Below are positions 40,311-63,467 of a stretch of DNA of 64,000 bases, one piece after another. Numbering within the stretch: the stretch's first letter is position 1; each line of letters starts with the position of its first letter. The notes beneath the pieces were generated by a model that saw nothing but the letters and a program-made list of their open reading frames with translations, had not been told where the DNA came from and ran no database searches. The position numbers and the translations under genes were made by a program. Source of the DNA: Oikopleura dioica (taxonomy: Eukaryota; Animalia; Chordata); NCBI GenBank assembly GCA_907165135.1, contig OU015568.1:7254001-7318000 (forward strand), written 5' to 3'.

Positions 40311-43300
40311 ATGTCGCTTTGGGATCCCGAGGCAGCTGGCAATGCCGCCAACTATCTTCGACTTCCTGACAAGGAAATGCTGGAGATCCGAAACCAGCCA
40401 TTCGAGGGTGCTAAAGCCGTCTGGGTTCCATTCGCTGATACTGGCTACTGCAAAGGCGAATTGATCGGTGATGGTGACAAGCCCGGAACTAAAAGGTCCT
40501 CCGAGCTGCTGACCGAAAAGAGAAGGATCTCAAGCAAGAACTTGTAAGTCACAAATTTGTCTTATTTGATTTTTATATTTTTCATAGATTGAGAAGCAGA
40601 ACCCTCCAAAATACGAGCTTCTTGAAGATTTGGCCAACATGACTTACCTTTCCGAAGCTTCCGTTGTCTACAACTTGGACGAGCGATACCGACGATTCTT
40701 GATCTACACCTACTCCGGTCTCTTCTGTGTCACTGTCAACCCCTACAAATGGCTTCCCGTTTATGACAACCACGTTGTCGGCTGCTACAAGGGCAAGAGA
40801 AAGTCTGAAATGCCTCCTCACATTTTCTCTATCTCCGATAACGCCTACAACGATATGTTGCGAGAGCGACACAACCAGTCCATGTTGATCACTGGTGAGT
40901 CCGGAGCTGGTAAAACTGTCAACACCAAGCGAGTCATCCAGTACTTCGCCGTCGTTGCTGCCCTCGGTGCCTCTGGTAAAGTCGGTGATGCTGCTGATGA
41001 GGGACCATCGCTCAAGGGTGGTGGAACTCTTGAAGATCAGATTGTCGCTGCCAACCCCGCTATGGAGGCTTTCGGTAATGCCAAGACTACTCGTAACGAT
41101 AACTCTTCTCGATTCGGTAAATTCATCCGAATTCACTTCGGTTTGACTGGTAAACTCGCTTCTGGTGATATCGATACCTATCTTCTCGAAAAATCTCGAG
41201 TCGTCTTCCAGCTCAAGGCCGAGCGATGCTTCCACATCTTCTACCAAATTTGCTGCGAGCATATGGTCGAAATCAACGAGATGACCCAGATTTCTCACAA
41301 TCCTTACGACTACAAGTTCTGCTCCATGGGTGAGATCAAGGTCAAGTCCATCGACGATAAGGAAGAACTCGCTGCCACTGACGAGTCCTTTGATATTCTC
41401 GGTTTCAACCAGGAAGAAAAGAACGGTATCTACATGATTACTGCTGGTCTTATGCACTCCGGAAACATGGAATTCAAGCAAAAGCCCCGAGAAGAACAGG
41501 CCGAGCCCGACGGTCACGAAGCTGCCGAACTTGCCGGATATATGTTCGGTATTTCTGGAGCTGAGTACACTAAGGCCCTCTGTACCCCACGAATCAAGGT
41601 CGGTACTGAGTACGTCACCAAGGGTCAGACCGTTGACCAGGTCAACTTCGCCCTCAAAGCCATCTGCAAGGCTGTCTTCGATCGACTCTTCAAATGGCTT
41701 GTCGAAGTCGTCAACCGAGCTCTCTCCACCGATCTCCCTCGATCTTTCTTCATCGGTATCCTCGATATCGCCGGCTTCGAAATTTTCGAGTTCAACACTT
41801 TCGAACAGCTTTGCATCAACTACACCAACGAAAAGCTCCAGCAGTTCTTCAACCATCACATGTTCGTTCTTGAACAGGAAGAATACAAGAAGGAAGGCAT
41901 CGAGTGGGAGATGATCGATTTCGGTATGGATTTGGCCGCTACCATTGACTTGATCGAGAAGCCTCTTGGTATTATGTCCACCCTCGAAGAAGAGTGCATG
42001 TTCCCTAAAGCTACTGACATGACCTTCCGAGACAAGCTCTTCCAGCAACATTTGGGTAAGAACGACAAGATTGGCAAGCCCAACCCGAAGAACCATAAGA
42101 ACGCTGATGTGCCTGCTCCTCACTTTGAATTGTACCACTACGCTGGCACTGTCGGTTACAACGTCACCGATTGGCTCCTCAAGAACAAGGATCCTCTCAA
42201 CCCCTCTGTTGTCGGTCTTCTTAAGAAGTCCAACAATAAATGTATTGTCATGCAGTGGGAGTCTTACATGTCCGCTGAAGACGCCGCCGAAGCCGCCAAG
42301 AAGGGTGGCGGAGGAAAAGGTGGCAAGCGACAGAAGGGTGGTTCTTTCCAGACTGTCTCTGGTCTCCATCGAGAATCTCTCGGTCGCTTGATGGCCAACC
42401 TTCGATCTACTCAGCCTCATTTCGTCCGTTGCATCATTCCCAACGAGAAGAAGAAGCCCGGTTTCATGGACTGGAACCTTGTTCTCCATCAGCTTCGATG
42501 TAACGGTGTCTTGGAAGGTATTCGAATTTGTCGAAAGGGTTTCCCTTCCCGAGTCCAGTACGAAGAATTCGCCAAGCGATACGTCATTCTTCATGCCGAA
42601 GCCAAGAAAGACCAAGAATTCTGCGACTGGAAAGCGATGTCTAAGGAAATCTGCGCCGGTATCGCCCTTGATGAAGCCAAGCACAAGTTCGGTCACACTA
42701 AACTCTTCTTCAAAGCCGGTGTTATTGGTGACTTGGAAGATGAGCGAGACGAAAAGATTGCTAAGATCCTTACTTCTCTCCAGTCTTACATGAGATATCG
42801 ACTCGCCGAGCGAACTTACGCTGAGATGGTCAAGCGACGAGACTGTATCGAACTCATTCAGGGCAACATCCGAGCCTTCCAGTATTTGAAAGATTGGGAA
42901 TGGATGAAGATCATCTTCAAGATCAAGCCTCTCATCTCTCAGGCCGAGGAGGGCAAGAAGATGCAGGAGCTTGAGAAGAATTACGAAGAGGTCAAAACCA
43001 AGCTCGAAAAGGAGAAAAAGCGACGAATCGAGCTCGAAGAGCAGGCCGTTTCATTCGAACAAGAAAGAAACGAGCTTATGCAAAAGTCTGAAGCTCAGAA
43101 CGCATTGCTTGATGATGCTGAAGGTCGATGCGAAGAACTTATCGCCGCCAAGATCGAACTCGATGGTAAGATTCGAGATCTTCAGGAGCGACTTGAAGAC
43201 GAAGAAGAAATGAACAACGAGCTCGTCGCTAAGAAGCGAAAGCTCGAAGATGAGTCCTCCGAGCTCAAGAAGGACATTGATGATCTTGAACTTACTCTTG

Positions 43301-46249
43301 CCAAGATCGAGAAAGAAAAACACGCCACTGAAAACAAAGTGAAGAACGTCACCGAAGAGCTTGCTACCATCAACGAAAATATCCACAAACTTGAGAAGGA
43401 GAAGAAGGCTCTTCAGGAAGCCCACAAGCAAACCCTTGGAGATCTCCAAAGTGAAGAAGAAAAGGTCGTTACCCTCACCAAGTCTAAGGGCAAACTCGAA
43501 CAGCAAGTCGATGATCTCGAAATTGGCCTTGAATCTGAAAAGAAGGCTCGAATGGATCTCGAGCGAGGTAAACGAAAGCTCGAAGGAGACATCCGACTTT
43601 CTCAGGAGCAGATCATGGATCTCGAAAACGATAAGGCTGGCCAGGAAGAAAAACTGAAGAAGTCTGAGTTTGACTTCACCCAGCTCAATGCCAAACTTGA
43701 AGATGAAAGCGCCCTTGTTGGTCAGCTCCAGAAGAAAATTAAGGAACTTCAAGGCCGATCAGAAGAAGTCGAAGAAGAGCTTGAGTCTGAGCGAGGTTCT
43801 CGTGCTCGATCTGAAAAGACTCGAGCTGATCTCTCCCGAGAGCTCGAAGAACTCGCTGAGCGACTTGAAGAGGCTGGTTCCAATACTCAGGCTCAGATTG
43901 AGGTCGCCAAGCGACGAGATGCCGAAGCTGCAAAGGTCCGACGAGAACTGGAAGAAGCAACTCTCAACCACGAATCGACTATCTCCAACATTCGTAAGAA
44001 GCAAGGTGACCAATCTAGCAGCCTCAATGAGCAGATCGAAAACCTCAACCGAGTCAAGCAAAAGCTCGAGAAGGAAAAATCCGAGGCTAAACTTGAAGTC
44101 GATGAGCTCCACGTCAACGTTGAATCATTGACCAAGTCTAAGCTCAATTACGAAAAACAGACCCGAAACCTCGAAGATAGCATCGCCGATCTCAAGATGA
44201 AGCTCGAAGAAGGCGCTGCTCAGCTTTCTGAGTCTCAGGGCGACTGCGGAAAGATGACTATGGAGATCAATGAAATTCGTCGACACATTGAAGAAAAAGA
44301 CACCGTCAACTCTCAACTCGTCCGAAACAAAAACTCTCTTTCTCAGACTCACGACGAGCTCAAGCGACAATGCGATGAAGAGGGCAAGACTAAGAACGCT
44401 CTTGCTCATCAGCTCCAGGCTCAGCGACACGATACTGATATGCTCCGCGAACACATGGAAGAGGAGCAGGAGTCTAAGCAAGAACTCCAGCGTAACTTGA
44501 CTAAATCCAACAACGAGTGCGTCCAGTGGCGAAACAAGTATGAGACTGATGCTATTCAGCGAACTGAAGAGCTCGAAGAGGCTAAGAAGAAGCTAGTCGC
44601 GCGACTCCAGGAGTCCGAAGAACAGGTTGAGGCAGCTCAAGGACGATGCGGTTCCCTCGAAAAGACCAAGACCCGACTTCAGGGCGAAGTTGAAGATCTT
44701 TCTGCTGATTTGGAGCGATCTAACGCCGCCGCCGCTCAACTCGACAAGAAACAGCGAAACTTCGACAAGCTCCTGTCCGAAGCTAAACAAAAGCAGGAAG
44801 AAGCCGCCGTTGAACTCGAAATTGCGCAAAAGGAAGTTCGATCTCAGCAGAGTGAGCTCTTCAAGCTCAAGAACTCTACTGAAGAGGCCGTTGATCACCT
44901 CGAATCTATCCGACGAGAGAACAAGAACCTTGCCGAGGAAGTTCAAGAGCTCGTTGACCAGCTCCAGGAAGGATCCAAGACCATCCACGAACTCGAAAAG
45001 AGCAAGCGAATCGCTGACCAAGAACGATCTGATATCCAGGGTACTCTTGAGGAAGCTGAAGCTGCTATCGAAACCGAAGAAGCCAAGACCCTCCGAGTTT
45101 CTGTTGAGCTCCAGCAGCTCAAGCAAGAGATCGACCGACGAATCAGCGAGAAGGATGAGGAAATCGACAGTTCCCGACGAAACGCCGCCCGAGCTGTTGA
45201 GCAGATTCAAGCCTCCCTTGATAATGAGATGCGAGCCCGAGGAGAAGCTATCCGAGCTCGAAAGAAGATGGAATCCGATCTTAACGACCTCGAAGTTTCC
45301 CTTGCTACTTCCACTCGACAGGCTAACGATGCCCAGAAGAACACCAAGGATCTTATGTTGCAGCTCAAGGACTTGAATCAGCGACTTGATGACAGCCAGC
45401 GAAGCACCGAGGATATGCGAGAGCAGTCTGCTGTTTGCGAACGACGAGTTGGTCTCATGACAACTGAAATTGAAGAGCTCCGAAACGGACTTGAACAGGC
45501 TGAGCGAACGCGAAAGCAGGCTGAGAACGATTTGATGGAAGCCAACGAGCGATCCAACATGCTCCACACCCAGAACGGCGCTTTCATCAACCAGAAGCGA
45601 AAGATCGAATCCGAACTTCACGGCGTCAAGAATGAAGTCGAAGAAGCTATCGGTGAAGCTCGATCTGCTGAAGATGCCGCCAAAAAGGCTCTTACTACCG
45701 CTGCTCTCCTGTCCGAGGATTTGAAGAAGGAGCAGGATCAGTCCCAGCATCTTGACCGAATGAAGAAGAATCAGGAGAACTCCCTCAAGGATCTTCAGAT
45801 GCGACTTGACGAAGCCGAGCAGGTCGCTCTCAAGGGCGGTAAGAAGGCCGTCCAGCGATTGGAGAACAAGTGCCGAGAAGTTGAGATGGAACTCGAAGCC
45901 GAACAGAGACGAACTTCCGATAACACCAAGGTAAGCAGCAGCTTAGAAAATTGTCTTTTACAAAGTCATTTTTAAGGTCATCCGAAAGCTCGAGCGAAAG
46001 TACAAAGAAGCCCTCTACGCTAACGATGAAGACAAGAAGAACCTCCAGCGACTCTCTGACAGCATCGACAAGCTCAACTCCAAGGCCAAGTCTTACAAAA
46101 AGTCTGCTGAAGACGCCACTGAGTCCGCTTCCTCCGCCATGTCTCGATACCGAAAGGTTCAGCACGAACTCGACGAAGCAAACGAGCGAGCTGAGATGGC
46201 CGAATCTGCTGTCAACAAGGCTCGATCCAAGGCTCTTGAGTCCAAGTAA
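40311..46249 (+). CDS. Striated-muscle class II myosin heavy chain; 3 coding exons; apparent 1-nt frameshift in coding exon 1
   Basis: GESGAGKT P-loop, [32 protein letters not shown] region and long heptad rod. Exons are 40311-40543, 40588-45930 and 45977-46249; AATAAA at ~46279. Confidence 0.97.
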
Positions 46250-52292: not shown

Positions 52293-53280
52293 TGGTGACG
52301 GCCGTCTTCTTTGACGTCTTTTGATGACAAAGAAGAGATTTCCTCCTTGCAATTTGCATGCATCTTTGGAAAGGTCGAGGTCTTTTCAGACGAAAGATAA
52401 ATTCCTCTCAAATTCAACCCCTTCCTATCGCATTCTGGACAGCTTCATCAGCATCTAATCCCAAATCGTCAATGTTTTCTTATACGTACGCTTCAAATGT
52501 CTCCTGTTTTATATTCAGGACAACTTTTACTTGATCATCAGCCATTCTCAAACGATCGAGTATTATCTCTACTTTTGAATGGAACTTTGAGTACCTCTTT
52601 CATCTCGAAAACGGTCCGACAGCTAAAAGTACATTCCGACGAGAATATTTCAATTGACAAATTGGTGAACGCTTCGTTCAGGGGGTAGGACCAACTCGTC
52701 TTCCCCCCCCCCACTCCGGCGGGTGACAAAAAATGGCCGGACCAAGCGGATGACAAGCCCAACACGGCCGAACTGCCCGACTCCGCGGAAAACAGCGAGT
52801 CTCTCTCCATCAAAGTTCACGCTGTTCTAATCTAATTTTAATCCAGCTGTGCTATGATCTTCTCTTCCGTTTGAAAAGTCTTTTCTCATCATCCAGCTGA
52901 TCTCTAATTATCTTTCATCTTTTCCCAGCTGATCTTCAGACTCTGTCGGCGCCATTACATCTGTTTCTTTGTTGTCGCAAAAGCAAATTCCAATCGGAAG
53001 AGCTGGCTCTAGGATCCTTCCGCATATCTATGCTATTACGCCTGGCGAGCGGGAAAGGTCTCGTCAGTTTCACTTCAAACATGGACAATCGAATACTCGC
53101 CGTATCTTCACTATTAAAAATGTTTACAAGGATGTTCTTAATCAGCGTATTTGGATCAGTGGGATGAAGGTTGACCTGAGCTCGCATTTCTACCTTCTTC
53201 ATTTTCACTATCAACAAGAACGCGGGCAACATCCCAGGCTTCCATCAGACCATCTTCTTCTCTGTCTGCTACTTCTGGTT
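52293..53280 (-). pseudogene. Mosaic of duplicated gene fragments: ARMC6 5' end, TAF5 3' end, unidentified fragments, and an internally deleted TAF5 piece
   Basis: 52293-52690 matches 60690-61085; 53160-53238 matches 61140-61217 and is fused directly to 53240-53280, which matches ~62472-62512. Confidence 0.85.
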
Positions 53281-53460
53281 AATCGTATGGGAGAGATCGT
53301 GGGATAGAGGCGCTGGGACAGAAGAAAAACTGGTCGGATTGACTTGAAAATTTCAGTCAATACTAATTCAGGGCCGTAGATTTTAAATGGGTTACAAAAA
53401 TATGATTAAACTTTAAGAAAATGCTTTTTTGGAAAAAAAGTTCGAACCAGAGTTATCATT
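53279..53460. mobile_element. Left end of the piggyBac-like MITE family (truncated)
   Basis: TTAATCGTATGGGAGAGATCGTGGGATAGAGGCGCTGGGACAGAAG..ACTGGTCGGAT resembles 5891-6060. Confidence 0.7.
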
Positions 53461-53694
53461 ATAAAATGGACAAAATCTCTTCTCTCTTACCAAAGTGTGG
53501 AACTTCTTGGACAACTAATCTTACTGATTATCATCTGATCATCTTCCTGCGTAAGACGTCAGCGGGAGCTCAGTCTCAGTAGGACATGGGCCCAGGAAAC
53601 GCCCTCTTTTGGCGATGACTGTTCGCCCCTCGAACCTCTCGCGCGCCCTTTTCGAACTCGCTCTGGAAAACGTCTCTTAATCAAAACATCAAAA

Positions 53695-54660
53695 ATGCAA
53701 AACCAAGTTGTTTTCAACCAACTCGGCGGTGCCTTCGTCCATGGTCGCCCCCTCGATCTGGAAACACGCGAGAAGATCGTCCAAATGTCTCAAATGGGAA
53801 TCCGCCGCTGCGTTATTTCTCGTGATCTGCGCGTTTCTATCGGCTCCGTTAGAAATATTCTCTCCCGCTTCAACAAAACTGGCCAAATCAAGCCTGGCGA
53901 GAAGAGAAGATCCAATGTCAGCAAGGAGCACGAATACCTGATCGTCGAGTACCGCAAGCAATTTGCCTGTGCCTGGGAAATACGAGAAGAAATGTTCAAA
54001 GAAGGCTTCCAGAAAGTCCCTTCCGTCGATCAAATCAAACGAGTGCTCCGCAAAAAAGGCTGCCCAGAAGAAGGCGACACCACCGACCCCGCTTCCGATC
54101 TCGATCTTTCCCCACCAACCAAGCCTCGTCGAGCTCCAACCAAATTCACTCAAGCTCAAGTCGACGCTTTCGAAGGCGCCTTTCTCAAAACCCACTATCC
54201 TGATGCCTGCGTCCGCGAAGAACTCTCGGTCCTCACCGGCATAGATATGAGTCGCATTCTAAACTGGTTCAAACACCGACGACGTCGCTACCGAAAAGAA
54301 TGCCCCGCACAGCAAGTCTCAAATCAGCCGATTCAAACTGCACCCTGCCCTTCAAATGCTCCAGCGGTTCCAACAATGGTGCCTTCTCCTCCTCCAATGG
54401 CCGATTCTCCACCAACCTCTTGGCTTCAAGAATTTATCGCTGAAACGATCGGTCCTCAACAATATTTTGACGTCCAGGAAGTCCACCAGCAAGGCAACTC
54501 TTCCGGCGGAAACAGCCCCAATGAATCTGGCTGCTACTATCCACCAGCTTCCGCTCCCGTTCCCGAAGCAGCCCAAGAGCAAATCTACAGCGCTCCAATC
54601 AATCCACCATTCGATTTTTTCAGCCCCGAAGACACCTTCCAGCAATACTTTACGCTATAA
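53695..54660 (+). CDS. Intronless Pax3/7-derived protein: paired domain plus one divergent homeodomain (321 aa)
   Basis: NQLGGAFVHGRPLDLETREKIVQM..GIRRCVISRDLRVS..WEIRE..VPSVDQIKRVLR (paired); HD PRRAPTKFTQAQVDAFEGAFLKTHYPD..REEL..WFKHRRRRYRK; no octapeptide. Confidence 0.9.
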   Translation: MQNQVVFNQLGGAFVHGRPLDLETREKIVQMSQMGIRRCVISRDLRVSIGSVRNILSRFNKTGQIKPGEKRRSNVSKEHEYLIVEYRKQFACAWEIREEMFKEGFQKVPSVDQIKRVLRKKGCPEEGDTTDPASDLDLSPPTKPRRAPTKFTQAQVDAFEGAFLKTHYPDACVREELSVLTGIDMSRILNWFKHRRRRYRKECPAQQVSNQPIQTAPCPSNAPAVPTMVPSPPPMADSPPTSWLQEFIAETIGPQQYFDVQEVHQQGNSSGGNSPNESGCYYPPASAPVPEAAQEQIYSAPINPPFDFFSPEDTFQQYFTL

Positions 54661-54799
54661 TTTTATTTTCAATTACATTCATTTTCGCTCTTTGTAAATT
54701 TTTTTTTCTTCTTAATTTTTTCTTGCACCAATTCTTACTTGTTTTTATAATAAAATCTTCAAAAATATTTCTTCTCAGCTTTTTTTTTATCAGACAAAT

Positions 54800-56160
54800 T
54801 CTAACACAAATAATAAATCTCGTTTTAAAATTCTTTTGATCTGAAATGCCAAAAATAACTGACACTTTGAGAATAAAAAAACGCTTTGCTTGTAATCCTC
54901 CTGAAATTGTACAGATGAGTACTCAATAAAAGAAAACAAATGAAAAAACAGGCCAGTCTTTCGTTCCTAATCAGTGATTAGTAATCACTATGTCAAAGTC
55001 TTAAACAGGTCAAGATCTCACGAGAACACGAGAAGTTCTACAGAAAAAGCTCCGAGAGGAAGAAAGAGACTGTTTACTCAAGTTGGCAGGGTTATCAGTG
55101 CATCCGAATGAGACCGTGGAGAAACGAAGAAAAAATACTGTTTGGAACAACTTTGGATTCGTCGGATTCTTCGGGAGCAGCACGGATCAGATTTATTGCA
55201 AGTTCTCCGCAGTTCATACTAGCCGCGTCTTTACAGAAATCTTTCGAGACCAAAAGAGAAGAAATGAGAGTCAAAACTTTTAACTTAAAAGTTTGTTCGA
55301 GCAGCTTCCTTTGCTCTTTTCAAGAAGTTTTTCAGCAAGACGAATCGAGTTTTCCAATAAATTGTGATCGACAACATAAGTTTTTGCTCTTTGATGCGCT
55401 AGAAATCTTTAACTTCTCTATACACGGGCGCGCGAGTAAGCGCTCAAAACACGGGGTCGGGAAAACCGACCACCAAGCATTATTCAGCCCTGCGCGGCGC
55501 GCTAAATCCGGAGTGTGAAAAATAGCGCCCACTATTTTGATCCCTCATTCATATTTCCGTCCAGGTAATAAGTTCAAAATAATACTGTTAGAAAGCTTGA
55601 ACACTCAGCTATTTACTCATATTATTATTAAGGAGAAAAAACCTGCAAATTTTTCGATAATGAGCTCGAAAGAGATCTGGTGCAAAGCGCCATCCCTCTT
55701 GAAAAATTTCACGAAACTTCGCAGAGTGGTTCGGTTTGTTCATATAACTTATATGATAAGTGCACATTGCAAAAATAAGGTCAAATGGATTGCCTCATTT
55801 GAAGTAACTGAGGGCCAAAGCCGCCGTGGTCGGTTTTTTCATATTCAACCCGCTTAGTCACCTTGGGATGATCCCAATGGGATCCCTGACTTCGATGATC
55901 ATCATCAACAAGCTGAGCCTGGAACATGGCACAAGCGCTCAAAACAGCGTTTTCAAACTCATCAGTGATCTCGTGATCCGGACGCAGTATTTTACAAAGT
56001 TGGCCTTGAATACCTTCAGTCATCATCGCGCATCTGTTTTCTTCGTGATTTTCAGAAACGCGTTTTACAAATCTATTCAGAGCAGCGAGGAACTCCCAGG
56101 TGCTCGTTTAGTTATCATACTTAAAACTTCTAAAAGCGGGAATTTCTCCAATAAAATCTC
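54800..56160. pseudogene. Mosaic of duplicated fragments: orphan 3' region, 5' half of the 132-aa ORF, two ARMC6 internal pieces
   Basis: 54800-54950 matches ~50780-50940; 55010-55157 matches ~51425-51570; 55165-55410 matches ~59910-60140; 55860-56110 matches ~60170-60415 with a 14-bp insertion. Confidence 0.85.
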
Positions 56161-56211
56161 CATCAAAGTTCACGCTGTTCTAATCTAATTTTAGTCCAGC
56201 TGTGTTATGAT

Positions 56212-56654
56212 TAGGGTGGCACGCAAAAAAAATCAACTTTTGCATTAAATATCGTATAGGGATCATTTTCGGATATAATATAATCTTGCCGCCGAAAATT
56301 CCAAATCTGAAAGAAAAAATTTTTTGTGACCTCAGAAAGTACTTTTTTTATATTTATATTTTATAGTTATCGGTCGATTAGTACTCGACAACTGTGATGA
56401 CCAAAACATTTTCTTTTTGATTCTGACTAAATCGAGTGCGCTCTTTTCAATGGTGAGCTTCGTTTTTCTCTATCTTCGGTTGCTCAAAATATTGATTTTT
56501 TAGTACTTTTGGAGGCTAGAAAATAGTACTTTTTTTCAAAATTTTGAAAAAAAAATTTTAGGCTCGTTCAGACACTCTGATATCTCGAACATATCCAAAA
56601 ATGAGATATCTAGATCTTTTACATCAAAAGCTGATTTTTTTGCGCGCCACCCTA
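56212..56654. mobile_element. hAT-like MITE (443 bp) with 8-bp TSD
   Basis: TAGGGTGGCACGCAAAAAAAATCAACTTTTG / CAAAAGCTGATTTTTTTGCGCGCCACCCTA; TSD GTTATGAT at 56204-11 and 56655-62; empty site GCTATGAT present once in the paralogous block at ~52851. Confidence 0.92.
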
Positions 56655-56662
56655 GTTATGAT

Positions 56663-57250
56663 CTTCTCTTCCGTTTGAAAAGTCTTTTCTCATCATCCAG
56701 CTGATCTCTAATTATTTTTCATCTTTTCCCAGCTGATCTTCAGACTCTGTCGGCGCAATTACATCTGTTTCTTCGTTGTCTCAAAAAGCAAATTCCAATC
56801 GGAAGAGCTGGCTCTAGGATCCTGGCGAGCGGGAAGGGTCTCGTCAGTTTCACTTCAAACATGGACAATCGAATACTCGCCGTATCTTCACTATTAAAAA
56901 TGTTTTCAAGGATGTTCTTAATCAGCGTATTTAGGATCAGTGGGATGAAGGTTGACCTGAGCTCGCATTTCTACCTTCTTCATTTTCACTATAAACAAGA
57001 ACGCGGGCAACATCCCAGGCTTCCATCAGATGATCTTCTTCAATGTCGGCTACTTCTGGTTAACCGCATGGGAGAGATCGTGGGATAGAGGCGCTGTTAC
57101 AGAAGGTGTATTCCACTGCATTTAAGAAAAATACTGGTCGGATCGACTTGAAAATTTCAGTCAATTCTAATTCTGGACTGTAGATTTTAAATCTGCTTAC
57201 AAAAATAAGATTAAACTTTAAGAAGATGCTATTTTTTGGAAAAATAACTT
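56663..57250. repeat. Second copy of the fragment/TAF5/piggyBac-end cassette upstream of the Pax gene
   Basis: Near-identical to ~52859-53460, including TTAACCGCATGGGAGAGATCGTGGGATAGAGGCGC..AGAAGGTGTATTCCACTGC at 57060. Confidence 0.85.
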
Positions 57251-57529
57251 ATTTTTCAAATGAGTCTCGAACCAGAATTATCATAATAAAATGGACAAAA
57301 TCTCTTCTCTCTTACAAAAGTGTGGAACTTCTTGGAAAACGAATCTTACTGATTATCATCTGATCATCTTCTTGCGTAAAAACTCCACAGGAGCTCAGTC
57401 TCAGTGGGACATGCGCCCAAGAAACGCCCTCTTTTGGCGATGACTGTTCGCCCCTCGAACCTCTCGCGCGCCCTTTTCGAACTCGCTCTGGGCTTGGCCT
57501 GGGAAACGTCTCTTTATCAAAACATCAAA

Positions 57530-58873
57530 ATGCAAAACCAAGTTGTTTTCAACCAACTCGGCGGTGCCTTCGTCAATGGTAGCCCCCTCCCCCTGGAAAC
57601 TCGCGAGAAGATCGTCCAAATGTCTCAAATGGGAATACGCCCCTGCGTCATTTCTCGTGATCTGCGCGTTTCTAACGGCACCGTCTCCAATATTCTCTCC
57701 TGCTTCAACAAAACTGGCCAAATCAAGGCTTCAAGAAACGTTTCCGGCGGCTCGAAGAGAAGATCCAATATCAGCAAGGAGCACGAATACCTGATCGTCG
57801 AGTACCGCAAGCAATTTGCCTACGCCTGGGAAATACGAGAAGAAATGGTCAAAGAAGGCTTCCAAAAAGCCCCTTCCGTCTATCAAATCAAACGAGTGCT
57901 CCGCCAAAAAGGCTGCCCAGAAGAAGGCGACACCCCCGACCCCGCTTCCGATCTCGATCTTTTCCGACCAAAGGCTCGTCAAGCTCGAACCAAATTCACT
58001 CAAGCTCAAGTCGACACTCTCGAAGGCGCCTTCCTCAAAACCCACCATCCCGATGTCTGCGTACGAGAAGAACTCTCCGTACTCACCGGCATAAATACGA
58101 CTCACATTCGAGAGTGGTTCTCCAACCGACGAGCTCGCTACCGAAGACAGTACCGAGACGCGCAGCAACTCTCAAATCAGCCGATTCAAACTGCACCCTG
58201 CCCTTCAAATGCTCCAGCGGTTCAAACAACGGTGCTTTCTCCTTCTCCAATGGCCGATTCTCCACCAACCAAGCCTCGTCGAACTCGATCCAAATTCACT
58301 CAAGCTCAAGTCGACGCTCTCGAAGGCGCCTTCCTCAAAACCCACCATCCCGATGTCTGCGTCCGCGAAGAACTCTCCGTCCTCACCGGCATAGATATGT
58401 TTCGCATTCGGCAGTGGTTCTCCAACCGACGACGTCGCTACCGAAATGAATGCCCCGCGCAGCAAGTCTCGAACCAGCCGATTCAAACTGCACTCTGCCC
58501 TTCAAATGCTCCAACGGTTCCAACAATGGTGCCTTCTCCTTCTCCCACCGATTCTCCACCAACTTCTTGCCCTCAAGAATTCAACGCTGGAATGACTGCT
58601 CACGACGCTCAGTTCATGCAAGAATCCGACGCCACTCAACAAGCCCAGATTTACCAGAACATCGGTCCTCAACAATATTTTGACGTCCAGGAAATCCACC
58701 AGCAAGCCAACTCTTCCGGCGGAAACAGCCCCAATGAATCTGGCTGCTACTCTCCACTAGCTTCCGCTCCCGTTCCCGAAGCAGCCCAAGAGCAAATCTA
58801 CAGCGTTCCAATCAATCCACCATCCGTTTCTTTCAGCCCCGAAGACAGCTTCCAGCAATACTTTATGCTCTAA
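57530..58873 (+). CDS. Intronless Pax3/7-derived protein: paired domain plus TWO tandem homeodomains (447 aa from ATG 57530)
   Basis: NQLGGAFVNGSPLPLETREKIVQM..GIRPCVISRDLRVS..GGSK..WEIRE (paired); HD1 ..HPDVCVREELSVLTGINTTHIREWFSNRRARYRR; HD2 ..WFSNRRRRYRN, offset by exactly 300 bp. Confidence 0.93.
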   Translation: MQNQVVFNQLGGAFVNGSPLPLETREKIVQMSQMGIRPCVISRDLRVSNGTVSNILSCFNKTGQIKASRNVSGGSKRRSNISKEHEYLIVEYRKQFAYAWEIREEMVKEGFQKAPSVYQIKRVLRQKGCPEEGDTPDPASDLDLFRPKARQARTKFTQAQVDTLEGAFLKTHHPDVCVREELSVLTGINTTHIREWFSNRRARYRRQYRDAQQLSNQPIQTAPCPSNAPAVQTTVLSPSPMADSPPTKPRRTRSKFTQAQVDALEGAFLKTHHPDVCVREELSVLTGIDMFRIRQWFSNRRRRYRNECPAQQVSNQPIQTALCPSNAPTVPTMVPSPSPTDSPPTSCPQEFNAGMTAHDAQFMQESDATQQAQIYQNIGPQQYFDVQEIHQQANSSGGNSPNESGCYSPLASAPVPEAAQEQIYSVPINPPSVSFSPEDSFQQYFML

Positions 58874-59311
58874 TTTAACCTTCTAATTTATTTTCCTCTC
58901 ATTTTCGCTCTCTGTAAATTTCTTCTTGCACCGATTTTTACTTGTTTTTATAATAAAATCTTCAAAAATATTTCTTCTCAGTTTTTTTTATCAGACAAAT
59001 TATGAAAATAGAAGAAAAGCCAAATTAGATGATCGAATATATCGAGGCTTTGCGCGTGCAAAACAGTTTTTTTCATTTTGCTCGAAAGTAAAATATCACT
59101 GCTGCTAAAGTAATTCGTTTTTTTTTCTGAAACAGGAAGAGAGAAACAAAATCCAATCTTCCACTTTTAATTATAAGAACAATTAATACGCTTTATTAGT
59201 CTCAAAAAGACAGGAATGATTAGAATAGAAAAATATATATCAATAAATTGTGAAGTGAAATACAGTGAACTGGTTCAAACAGAAATCTAAGTTATCCGTG
59301 AAGTGAAAATT

Positions 59312-60941
59312 TTAAGAAATGTCCATGGCTTTGAGTCTGTCAGTTGTTCCATGCTCGAGTTTCTTCCCGCTCCCAGTCCAAATGCACTTGAGGGCGACTT
59401 CGCAGCCAAGATCTCGGAGGCAGGCTTTCGCTTCGTCCAGTTTGTGGGCTTGAAGGGCGGCGTTTGCGATGCTTTCAATGTGAAGTTCGAGGAATGGTTT
59501 TCGCAATTCTGGAGCGCGGACAACGCAGTTTCGAACTGCCATCAGTCCTGAAAGGAGTCAAGTTACTGCTTTTTCCGAAGGATGTACCTGCTCTTGTGAT
59601 AGATTTTGATTTACTATGCGCGTTGATAGCACTAACTACAGCTTCAGCGCCATTCATTTTGATGATTTCCTTGGCGCACTCTGGGTTTCTCAATGTCAAG
59701 GCAGTAACGGAGCTAGAAAGATTCATGTCATAATTTGTTAAAATCAAAATCTAACCGAAGAGCAGCTAGGGCAACGCCTGGCTGGGAAAAGTGCCTCATA
59801 AGAGCGCCAATGACATCTTCATGAACTTTGAGCTGAGTGACCATTTTGTGCTTGACCTCGTCATTTCCGATCAGAGCTTTGATCAGATTCAGACACGCCT
59901 TGACTCTATCAGATTCTTCTGGAGCAGCACGGATCAGGTTTATTGCAAGTTCCCCACAGTTCATACTAGCCGCGTCCTTACAGAAATCGTTCGAGACCAA
60001 CAAAGAAGAAATGAGAGTCAAAAGTTTATTCGAGCAGCTTCCTTTGCTCTTTTCAAGAAGTTGTTCAGCAAGACGAATCGAGTTTTCTAGTAAATTGTGA
60101 TCGACAACATATGCTTTCGCTCTTTGATGCGCTAGAAATTTTTAATATTCATATTCAACCCTCTCAATTACCTTGGGATCCTTGACTTCGATGATCATCA
60201 TCAACAAGCTGAGCCTGGAACATGGCACAAGCGCTCAAAACAGCGCTTTCAAACTCATCAGTGATCTCGTGATCTGGACGCAGTATTTTACAAAGTTGGC
60301 CTTGAATACCTTCTGTCATCATCGCGCATCTATTTTCTTCGTGATTTTCAGAAACGCGTTTTACAAGTCTAGCCAGAGCAGCGATGAACTCCCAGGTGCT
60401 CGCTTTATCTTCAAGCTTTCCCCAATTTTCGGCCATTTTGCTTATTTCGAACATCATAAACGAGTTAATCCAATCGGGTTGTCCACGAATGATGACAGAC
60501 AATCCACGAATGAGAATAGTCTTTTCTCCACCTTCGGCAGTTTTTATTCTATCCATAATTTTCTGATGCGCTTTGTAAAAATCAGTAGCGTAGTGTCTGG
60601 GCTCAAAGTCCTTGCATTCTTTTTGAAGATCTTCAAGAGCTTCTTTTGATGGTGAAGCAAGAAAGTTGTCGATTAAATGTAGGATCAAGTGACGGCCGTC
60701 TTCTTCGACGTTTTTCTTGATGACAAAGTAGAGATTTCCTCCTTGCACTTTGCACGTATCTTTTGATGGGTTTAAATACTTTCAAGCAAAAGATAAACTC
60801 TTTCTCAATTCAACCCCTTCCTATGGCATCTTGAACAGCTTCATCAGCATCTAATCCCAAATCGTCAATATTTTCTTTCACGTACGCATCAAATGTCTCC
60901 TGCTTTATATTCAGGACAACTTTTACTTGATCCTCGGCCAT
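59312..60941 (-). CDS. ARMC6: Armadillo repeat-containing protein 6
   Basis: IKQETFDAYVKENIDDLGLDADEAVQDA; VDDDHRSQGSQAHQRAK; LLVSNDFCKD; LIGNDEVK; LTLRNPE; AVRNCV; AKACLRDLGCEVALKCIWTG, collinear with ARMC6. Confidence 0.9.
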
Positions 60942-60997
60942 TCTAAATAAGAAGCAAGTAAAATCTTGAGTTTTGAACGGAACTTTGAGTAACTCTT

Positions 60998-63467
60998 TCA
61001 TCTCGAAAACGGTCCGGCAGCTAAAAGTACATTGCGGCGAGAATATTGCAATTGACAGATTGGTGAACGCTTCGTTCGGTAGGGTTGGTGGTATCGGTAG
61101 TTTTTCGCGAAACCAGTGGCAGTTGTCGAAACTAAAAAATGGGATGAACGTTGATCTGAGATCGCATTTCTACCTTCTTCATTTTCACTATCAACAAGAA
61201 CTCGGGCAACATCCCAGCTGATGATTTCTCCTTTGATAGTGCCGGCAGTGAGTACGGATCCGCAGCGCGAAAATGTCAGGGCGGTGATATGTTGATGTTG
61301 CACGGGAAGTTTAACAGTTCCCTAATGAGATTAGCTTTCAGTACTTAATTTGACGACTTTAACCTTTTGTTCATCGATTGAAAATCGCGCAACGAGAATC
61401 TCATCAGATTTGGTTGACTTTGACAAGTCCCAGAAAAGAACGTGGCCTCCAATATCCGCTGTGGCCAAGTATTTTCCGCCTTTGAGAATAAAATTAAAAT
61501 TCATTCTAGAGAAGAAAGACTCTTACAAGCACCGGACCAGGAAACTGTAGAAAGGCTGGAACGATGGCCAGTCAGTTGACGAACGCATTTTCCATCGAGA
61601 AGGTCCCAGATTCGGATACAGCGGTCTTCGCCGCCAGTAGCGATGTAATTTCCATTCGGGTGGAATCGGCAAACGGTAACGTCGGAATAATGACCTGCCA
61701 TCATGCGGACTGGGCTTTCTTTGTCAGTCACCCAAACGCTAGGAATTACAAGTTTTCAATCCAACTTGAGTAAGATAATACCGAAGCGATCTATCCATAC
61801 CAGCCGAGCAAAAGTAGTGTCCATAGGGACTAAAGTGAACATCCCAAATGGGCCACATATGTCCTCTATGAACAATCACACAAGTATACACTAGAAGTGA
61901 CCATAGCCTGACTGTGCCATCTTCTCCGCCACTGACCAAAAAGTCCTTTCTCGGAGAAATAGAAACGCCATAGACAGCGCCCGTATGGCCGAGGAGTTTT
62001 CGCGTGGCAGCTTCAGATACTTGAAGAATATTATCGAGCTCAAGGCGATCTTTGTCAAGCATTTCTAGTTGAGGAAGACTTTTGATTTCGCGCAGGTTGT
62101 CGTTGCCGATTGCGTTGACTCTGATACAGCCGTCTTCGAAGCCAGCGGCGAGCACAGTTGAGTCGTCAGAAATTGTGATCGAAGCTGGAAGGCAATCGGG
62201 ATCAGAGTTTAAAACAGAGTAGAATACGCAGCTCAATTTTTGATCCCCTTCAAATGTGATTCACAATTTTCATATACAGAACTCTTACCGGTTAGTTTAA
62301 CGCGATATTCAAGGTCTTTGTAGTACGAAAGCCAATCTGCTTTATCCCCAGCGGTCAGTAGATGTTCCTGAAGTCCAAGAAGCGGAACCCGAGTTGGGTT
62401 GGGTGCATTGGCATCATTTTTTGTCTTTCTCAAGGTTGGAGCTCGAGCTTTTTTCTTCTTTTTGGGCTCGTCTTCCATCAGATCATCTTCTTCTATGTCG
62501 GCAACTTCTGGTTGACGAAGTAAACCAAGTTGGATTTTTGACTAAAAAGATGAATTTCAACCGCAGAGTAGAGCCACCGTTCTTACCTTGTTGGCATCTC
62601 TTTTGCTTCGCCTAACAAGCCTCCGGAAACAGCATCAATCTGCTCTCGCGTTCTCGGAAGCCCGTCAAATTGATCAATGAAGAGATGATCTTCGAGAATA
62701 TCGATTAGCACTTGAATATTTCTATCGTTGATATGTCTCTTCAAACTCAGCAGAGAATCACGAGTCATTCGAATAATAAAATGACGGACTTTGAAAGTAG
62801 TTATCACATCGTTTTGCGCCAGTTGCTTCTTATTTGTAACTGTAGCAAGGCGTCTGATATCTTCAATATATGGAGAGTCTTCGCCAAAGCCCTTGGCGAA
62901 TTCGTTGTAGAAATTGCGACCTTCAATTTCGTAGTTGTTTACTAGCAGTTTTATGTAAATGTGAGCAAAGCAAGGAAACAGCAGTTGTGAAAGCTCAGCG
63001 CGACTCGAATCTTTTCAAGAGTTTGAAAACGAGATCTTCCAAATGATCAGAAATCGAGAAGAAAAACCCTTTCCTAATGATTGATCAACGAATCTCTGCA
63101 GCGCAACATAAGCTTCTTTATACGAGTCTTTATCGGTTTTTGATTCATATTGTCCAAGAACTTGTCTCACATCCGTCTCGATCGTCAAATCTTTTATATC
63201 GTCCTTGTTGATTCCAGTTTCTCGCTCAAGCGCGCCCAGAGCAAAAGTAAGCCCGTGATCTCCAAGTAGTTTCATGATGGATGCGATTTCACGCTTTTCT
63301 TGTGCATTTTTAGGTTCTTTTCTACTGAACTCTTCCGCTTGTGCAGGCTCGAATCCGATTTCTTCAACATCTCTTCCGGTTTCTTCCGGTACCGGAGCAG
63401 CTGGAGCTTCTTCTTTTAACTCCGGAGACTCAACTAGCTCCGGTTTTGGGAGCTCTTCCATATCCAT
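60998..63467 (-). CDS. TAF5: TFIID subunit TAF5 (LisH/NTD2 plus WD40 repeats)
   Basis: RAELSQLLFP NTD2; LLGHTGAVYGVSISP..SGGEDGTVRLWSL; GHMWPIWDVHFSPYGHYFCSAGMDR; GHYSDVTVCRFHPNGNYIATGGEDR; ends YRTKRSPICQLQYSRRNVLLAAG. Confidence 0.95.

Follow-up and report, generated by a model that had tools for sequence, protein, structure and literature searches.

The window analysed here is a 64,000-nucleotide (nt) stretch of the Oikopleura dioica genome (contig OU015568.1 of assembly GCA_907165135.1, positions 7,254,001 to 7,318,000 of the forward strand; unprefixed positions below are those of the window). At 53695-54660, on the + strand, it carries an intronless Pax3/7-like gene of 321 codons, from ATG to TAA, which we call copy A. 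Copy A and its tandem sister, copy B (57530-58873, + strand), descend from chr1.g1548, a conserved intronless Pax3/7-like gene on another chromosome (chromosome 1 of O. dioica OKI2018_I69). In copy A, residues of the kind used by paired domains and homeodomains to read DNA have been replaced, and the reading frame is intact. The balance of the evidence tilts towards copy A being a real, still-coding, fast-diverging young paralogue in which canonical DNA recognition has been lost or altered; because its frame is still protected while its sequence changes about ten times faster than that of the parent, we lean slightly towards a young gene in the course of divergence and away from mere junk.

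Copy A encodes a paired domain and a homeodomain

No stop interrupts the 321-codon frame in the open reading frame (ORF) listing of the window, as a preliminary description of this DNA had stated, and the 321-residue protein is identical to one in NCBI that was modelled automatically on an O. dioica record of 17.09 Mb. The paired domain (residues 6-119; 53710-54051, + strand) was recognised by the Pfam model PF00292 (PAX; E 1.6e-28, 99.6 bits against a cut-off of 22) and by alignment to the paired domains of Prd, Pax5, Pax6 and Pax8, its best solved relative being Prd (1pdn, E 1.6e-22). The homeodomain, placed at residues 144-203 (54124-54303, + strand) by codon table and Pfam, is matched by PF00046 (Homeodomain) over residues 145-201 (E 1.4e-12, 47.7 bits against a cut-off of 22.9). 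On reading the 24-36 residues between the two domains, an octapeptide resembling HSIDGILG was not found in copy A or in the parent; its absence is therefore inherited and not specific to copy A.

The public annotation also contains short alternative models, of 137 residues for copy A (54247-54660) and 158 residues for copy B (58397-58873), which begin at a methionine inside the homeodomain (MSRILNWFKH... and MFRIRQWFSN..., respectively).

Copies A and B descend from chr1.g1548

The closest intact relative of copy A is CAG5104794.1 (OKI2018_I69 chr1.g1548, 362 residues), encoded on another chromosome by a single exon (L001:6001-7089); other O. dioica lineages have conserved orthologues of it, as do marine metagenomes. 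Its assignment to Pax3/7 follows the Joint Genome Institute (JGI) name for P0002/P0003, 'paired box protein 3/7', and the O. dioica Pax37 preprint (10.1101/2023.07.18.549157). Trees of the unduplicated parts and of the homeodomain unit returned the topology ((A,B),parent_OKI),(two other lineages), with support of 67 and 93. Synonymous divergence (dS) is 0.11 between the copies and 0.27 from the copies to the parent; the two other sequenced lineages stand at 0.33-0.41 from the parent. From the tree and dS together, the A/B pair is therefore specific to the Okinawan lineage; a scan of JGI metagenome contigs found no A-like loci.

Nucleotide similarity between the parent locus and each copy sets in about 8 nt ahead of the ATG and ceases about 120 nt beyond the stop codon, so what was copied was a promoter-less, roughly transcript-sized piece. 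An AATAAA poly(A) signal of copy A lies at 54749-54754 (+ strand), within a 28-nt block in which neither copy differs from the other or from the parent gene. That block was dropped as strong evidence: because a run of this length is not rare by chance, we read it as a retained signal only, and as weak evidence. The copied stretch extends about 45 nt beyond the poly(A) signal and ends without an A-tail, and a search upstream with the leader sequence used as query gave no spliced-leader remnant. These three features lend a retrocopy origin no support, although the roughly transcript-sized extent would suit one; the parent has no introns to lose, and copy A carries no disabling mutations.

Downstream of the parent orthologues, by about 380 nt, two marine metagenome contigs (L002:1759-2196 and L003:1492-1929) contain the same unannotated 145-residue ORF, and the parent locus itself has a 150-residue gene at the corresponding place (L001:7756-8397).

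The two copies lie in tandem units of about 3.8-4.3 kb. Copy B, as placed by domain search and alignments, encodes 447 residues comprising a paired domain and two homeodomains. The flanks of the units are 91-98% identical between A and B and contain fragments of neighbouring genes; the upstream flank common to both copies (52853-53694, + strand; 7.0% mismatches and eight indels, none a multiple of three) is absent from the parent locus and served as neutral control. In an independent DNA run (X4), none of the 30 bins into which a 6-kb stretch here was divided lacks contig coverage, and many are matched at 99% identity or more.

Several details of the units were recorded alongside. The spacers contain, at 55878-56122 and 52295-52679 (compared with 60174-60418 and 60689-61077), truncated pieces of the neighbouring genes (60164-61217) at 86-96% identity, which makes the region a patchwork of segments copied recently. 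In a comparison with 57958-58245 and 58258-58545, the copy A homeodomain (54108-54395) falls, with weak support (65%), beside the second homeodomain of copy B and not outside both; single derived states link it to the first (TAPC), and a state common to both (SPSP) is missing from it. In X4, one joint (53753>57590) leads from unit A into unit B across a skip of 3836 nt, and another (57071>53364) leads from the upstream part of B back 3708 nt to that of A; both rest on single short contigs and could represent copy-number polymorphism of the tandem array or a repeat artefact of short contigs.

DNA-contacting residues are replaced in three elements of copy A

Copy A was aligned with copy B, with the parent gene and with the orthologues by means of codon tables and nucleotide-level alignments; homeodomain numbering was anchored on F151 (position 8) and W191 (position 48), which places P148 at position 5, K193 at position 50 and H194 at position 51. 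The substitutions listed in the preliminary description are present in these alignments: the homeodomain recognition helix reads WFKHRR against WFSNRR in the family (S50K, N51H), the N-terminal arm reads PRRAPT against PRRAR(T/S) (R5P), IRPC in the paired domain has become IRRC (P36R), and the GGSK linker is lost, copy A reading GQIKPGEKRRS. What we amended was the reference. Copy A had been compared with its neighbour, which is equally derived from the parent and not a good reference; the proper reference is chr1.g1548. The copy A linker is six residues shorter than GQIKASRNVSGGSKRRS of copy B, which bears a two-residue insertion of its own, and four residues shorter than the ancestral GQIKPGASGGSKRRS. 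By nucleotide alignment and codon table, this in-frame deletion (12 nt against the parent, 18 nt against copy B) is sited at 53893-53901 (+ strand); it removes A67-S68-G69-G70, and S71 is replaced by E.

Besides P36R, the PAI subdomain of copy A has N14H (codon 53740-53742, FVNGRP>FVHGRP), H47I, which passed through N on the stem shared with copy B, C49S, S51R and K52N, so that the PAI recognition helix reads VSIGSVRNIL where the family has VSHGCVSKIL. The beta-turn change of copy B is R16S, that of copy A N14H. The RED recognition helix, PSVDQIKRVLR, is the same in copy A and the parent. In the homeodomain the changes include R5P (54136-54138), L16F, I47N, S50K with N51H (54271-54276, TCCAAC>AAACAC) and A54R. 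Positions 8-24, 30-35, 48-49, 52-53 and 55-57 are listed as unchanged in all three young homeodomains (L16F of copy A being listed separately), and positions 43, 46 and 47 carry a different replacement residue in each of the three. A further in-frame deletion, of 81 nt against the parent and 66 nt against copy B in the alignments, has its junction at 54447-54448 (+ strand) in the C-terminal region; terminal residues have also been lost in copy A, as in copy B.

Position 50 is lysine (AAA) in copy A and serine (TCC/TCT) in the parent, in all orthologues and in both copy B homeodomains. Serine 50 is the signature of PRD-class homeodomains (PMC4901127), and by this mark of the Pax3/7 group copy A, with K50, falls outside. 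It likewise departs from the conserved paired-domain contacts (Asn14, S-H/N-G-C-V-S-K and G-G-S-K), having H14, SIGSVRN and PG-EK in their place, and from the combination of Lys50, Asn51, Arg5 and Ile/Val47 found in the Otx, Gsc, Pitx and Bicoid type, having H51, P5 and N47. Because K50 arose from S50 on its own branch, copy A is not a K50-class member by descent. A word search limited to the homeodomain and aimed at other proteins with K50 and H51 came back blank, an uninformative outcome.

Base-contacting positions of the homeodomain are canonically 3, 5, 7, 47, 50, 51 and 54. On the stem and copy A branches combined, 16 of the 60 homeodomain positions changed, and among these were 5, 7, 47, 50, 51 and 54, that is, six of the seven contacts (hypergeometric p = 9e-4; 0.003 if positions 50 and 51 are counted as one event, 0.013 without position 7); since the contact set came from general knowledge and was fixed after the data had been seen, we regard this enrichment as supportive only. 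The earlier proposal that changes are concentrated at contact positions thus holds for the homeodomain in this post hoc sense (five or six of seven contacts, p about 0.003); positive selection is not shown.

In the paired domain the changes again fall on the beta-turn, PAI helix 3 and the linker. By our own numbering, which starts the PAX3 paired domain at residue 34, we take Asn47 of PAX3 to be paired-domain Asn14. Asn14 hydrogen-bonds a guanine in the Pax6-DNA complex, where bases are also contacted by Gly15, position 47 and a linker glycine, and binding depends crucially on the linker (PMC4330359); p.Asn47His in PAX3 causes Waardenburg syndrome type 3 (PMC12557235). Contact residues being replaced in three elements, the copy A protein most likely no longer recognises the target sites of the parent, as far as can be judged from its residues.

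AlphaFold2, supplied with an 11-sequence alignment, predicted the homeodomain as three helices, with a predicted local distance difference test score of about 80 in copy A and in the parent control alike. Confidence for the paired domain was low in both, and the prediction is uninformative on folding differences.

The substitutions S50K (TCC>AAA) and N51H (AAC>CAC) adjoin each other, amounting to four changes in six bases, and the paired domain has two triple-change codons, S51R (TCC>AGA) and S19D (TCC>GAT). Adjacent mismatch pairs between the copies exceeded expectation in the upstream flank (19 observed, 7.7 expected), in the coding region (17 and 10.8) and downstream (18 and 8.5), the non-coding regions compared being 52840-53694 and 54661-54800 with 56644-57529 and 58874-59005. 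As adjacent mismatches are over-represented even more in the flank than in the coding region, multi-nucleotide mutations seem to be common, and the K50/H51 pair probably arose, to judge from its codons, in one mutational event. Triple-hit codons were discarded as proof of positive selection, clustered mismatches being at least as frequent in non-coding flank. The clustering of non-coding mismatches is a separate observation, suggesting frequent multi-nucleotide mutations in this lineage or alignment effects near indels.

Constraint on residues fell about ten-fold

Pairwise omega (the dN/dS ratio, Nei-Gojobori) is 0.76 between copies A and B, rising to 1.1 in the homeodomain, and 0.04-0.10 among the parent orthologues. 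By parsimony, synonymous and non-synonymous changes number 13.5/33.5 on the copy A branch, 11/28 on the copy B branch, 17/30 on the shared stem and 20/4 in the parent; for the homeodomain by itself, non-synonymous to synonymous counts are 12:2 on the stem, 8.5:2.5 in A and 9:2 in B, an omega at or above 1. Maximum-likelihood (ML) branch models were fitted with our own GY94-F3x4 implementation to 311 codons of seven sequences. The background branches have an omega of 0.059. The shared stem has 0.44 (2dlnL, twice the log-likelihood difference, against omega = 1: 5.7), the copy A branch 0.61 (2dlnL 1.8, not significant), the copy B branch 1.17 (not significantly different from 1), and the young clade as a whole 0.63 (2dlnL 4.8, p about 0.03). 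The young clade lies far above the background (2dlnL 108.8); constraint on residues therefore fell about ten-fold.

The reading frame has been protected

Between copies A and B the coding region has indels of 18, 297, 3 and 66 nt, all four of them multiples of three, whereas none of the ten indels in the well-aligned flanks is (1, 25, 1, 23, 1, 20, 11, 1, 10 and 2 nt; Fisher's exact p = 0.001). At the flank density, about ten frame-breaking indels would be expected in the coding region; none was observed. Polarised on the parent, copy A has -12, -24 (common to B), -81 and a shortened end, and copy B has +6, the homeodomain duplication, -3 and -15, every one in frame. In neutral simulation the probability of no stop arising was 0.145 for the copy A branch (about 47 substitutions) and 0.023 for stem plus A (about 94). 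In the X4 run, all 12 listed indel differences fall outside both coding regions (p = 0.003), and three further indels lie outside the listing. In-frame indels and the lack of stops argue that selection removed frameshifts from both copies over the greater part of their existence. Such protection of the frame is not what plain decay would lead one to expect, and simple decay is disfavoured.

A proposed history of copy A, and its alternatives

In the history that we propose, a promoter-less, roughly transcript-sized piece of chr1.g1548 was copied to another chromosome within the Okinawan lineage, and the moved copy was then duplicated in tandem, new flanks included. With amino-acid constraint about ten-fold lower after the move, base-reading residues were replaced (N14H, H47I, S51R and K52N in the PAI subdomain, deletion of G69-G70 in the linker, and R5P, I47N, S50K with N51H, and A54R in the homeodomain), some of them probably by multi-nucleotide mutation. 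The cores of the helices were kept, as were the RED recognition helix and the open frame. If the protein is made, it may act through a changed or weakened specificity, by way of the RED subdomain and a K50/R54-type helix, or it may titrate, or compete for, partners of the parent protein.

Several observations weigh against copy A being a coding gene at present. In their coding regions A and B have diverged (7.7%) as much as in the non-coding flank upstream (7.0%). The copy A branch does not have an omega significantly below 1, so that its constraint is indistinguishable from none; this is part of what the preliminary description, which had named neutral dN/dS as one mark of simple decay, had set against its proposal, the branch estimates being 0.61 (ML) and 0.75 (parsimony). 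The promoter of the parent was not carried along with the copy. Loss of N51, R5, N14 and the GGSK linker would normally abolish binding, and decay would give the same picture; frame protection may have ceased recently, leaving no trace; and the test on contact positions is post hoc, as described above. Three runs of raw RNA reads, searched over 53300-59299 at 90% likeness, gave no reads on A or B, a blank which is uninformative because the runs could not be shown to be of Okinawan lineage. The reads matched solely pieces of about 44 nt at 56007-56050 and 59227-59272, and run on into sequence that is absent from the whole window, the true neighbouring gene included; the runs appear to stem from another lineage. 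Sequence words of copy A occurred in none of the runs on record as RNA and in none of 12 contig runs guessed to be RNA, which may be DNA.

These same observations make up much of the case that copy A is a non-functional relic, promoter-less and unexpressed, decaying neutrally with an ORF that has stayed open through the shortness of time. We think this unlikely, while taking it seriously: a branch omega of 0.61-0.75, equal coding and flank divergence, the blank in RNA reads, near-invariant residues lost from all DNA-binding modules, and a position among truncated fragments of neighbouring genes are all as it would have them. The state of the frame is not. It has stayed free of stops through about 47 substitutions on the A branch (P = 0.145), or about 94 when those of the stem are added (P = 0.023); at least two A-specific indels (-12 and -81) are both in frame, against none of ten in the flank; about five frame-breaking indels would be expected on the A branch at flank density (probability of none, 0.007); the indels of another individual avoid the coding sequence; and the helix cores are intact in all three young homeodomains. 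On the choice that the preliminary description had put, between neofunctionalisation or a dominant-negative role and early pseudogenisation, the evidence thus goes against simple decay, and positive selection is not shown. That copy A is an adaptively neofunctionalised factor, in which selection rewired K50, R54, positions 46, 47 and 51 and PAI helix 3 for a new motif, is improbable. Such selection would account for the concentration at base contacts (p = 0.003), the homeodomain omega, which reaches or exceeds 1 on each of the three young branches (stem, A and B), the independent change of positions 43, 46 and 47 to differing residues in the three young homeodomains, and the kept frame, and there is a precedent in Q50K and M54R, which gave Bicoid a new specificity after tandem duplication (PMC6177261). 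Yet an omega above 1 is not significant and concerns few sites; clustered multi-nucleotide changes are equally frequent in the flank, so triple-hit codons do not prove repeated selection; and H51 and P5 remove contacts needed in almost any homeodomain-DNA complex.

The tandem copies could lastly be an artefact of assembly, in which two haplotypes, or a repeat that had been collapsed, were placed one behind the other, as might befall a highly heterozygous species, and the X4 joints 53753>57590 and 57071>53364 do connect the units. We consider this scarcely credible, since the copies differ by 7-8% and by the indels of 18, 297, 3 and 66 nt, their flanking mosaics differ, contigs of the independent run fill 30 of 30 bins, six DNA runs from three studies contain words of copy A, and each joint is a single short contig with sides of 23-83 nt inside the repeat. 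Our preference thus remains with a still-coding, fast-diverging young paralogue. A bolder version of it, to which we give little credence, is that copy A and its two-homeodomain sister form a newborn Pax-derived regulator kept by selection, its contacts in the PAI subdomain, the linker and the homeodomain (K50/R54 plus the almost unknown H51) rewired for a new motif, or else act as a natural dominant negative of the parent Pax37 gene within a single cryptic species of O. dioica, in its nervous system or the epithelium that builds the house.

Few regulators of development are as conserved as Pax and homeobox genes, and a gene whose frame still shows selection has seldom had such near-invariant base contacts as N51, R5, paired-domain N14 and the GGSK linker replaced. 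If expressed, copy A would be a very young natural experiment (dS about 0.1 between the copies) in which a duplicated transcription factor escapes the targets of its parent, and the same genome offers the parent, the sister and two further homeodomains for direct comparison, in a species complex where genome change is known to be extreme. If not expressed, it would be an ordinary dying duplicate that calibrates how long an ORF can look healthy.

Another feature of the window

At 40630-45975 (+ strand) lies an uninterrupted ORF of 1781 codons for a myosin heavy chain, with motor domain and long coiled coil, an unusually long single exon for an animal genome.

Comparison with known systems

The nearest comparison is with the Pax37 genes of O. 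dioica itself, which share with copy A the organism group, the pairing of paired domain and homeodomain, and the fast divergence of some copies. A preprint on these genes reports conserved Pax37A/B and divergent Pax37C/D in O. dioica, and among oikopleurids a variable expansion to 2-8 Pax37-like genes per genome, the latter given as 'data not shown' (10.1101/2023.07.18.549157). Copies A and B fit the tendency to expansion reported in that preprint; they are not described there, and arose inside the Okinawan lineage.

The ETCHbox genes (Argfx, Dprx, Leutx and Tprx; Obox and Crxos), derived from CRX, are likewise tandem PRD-class duplicates in which one daughter line evolved fast beside a conserved parent, with repeated gain and loss (PMC4904359, PMC8208926, PMC5787275). 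One mouse ETCHbox gene has a double homeodomain, as has copy B. They differ from copy A in that preimplantation expression and function are documented, in being PRD-like without a paired domain, and in keeping N51.

Copy A reads WFKHRRRR in its homeodomain recognition helix, and the corresponding helix of Bicoid is, as we take it, WFKNRRRR. Bicoid, a Zen/Hox3 duplicate, also gained K50 and R54 after tandem duplication (PMC6177261). In Bicoid, however, N51 and R5 remain and position 47 is hydrophobic. With H51, P5 and N47 in copy A, recognition of TAATCC in the manner of K50 homeodomains cannot simply be assumed.

For the paired domain, the PAX3 alleles p.Asn47His and p.Asn47Lys (PMC12557235) provide a counterpart, copy A having histidine at the corresponding Asn14. 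The PAX3 case is a human loss-of-function allele, whereas that of copy A is a fixed change in a separate gene. In the Pax6(5a) isoform the PAI subdomain is disabled and binding occurs through RED. Pax6(5a) is a splice isoform; copy A likewise combines a damaged PAI subdomain and linker with an intact RED helix, and any binding left to it may be driven by RED in the same way.

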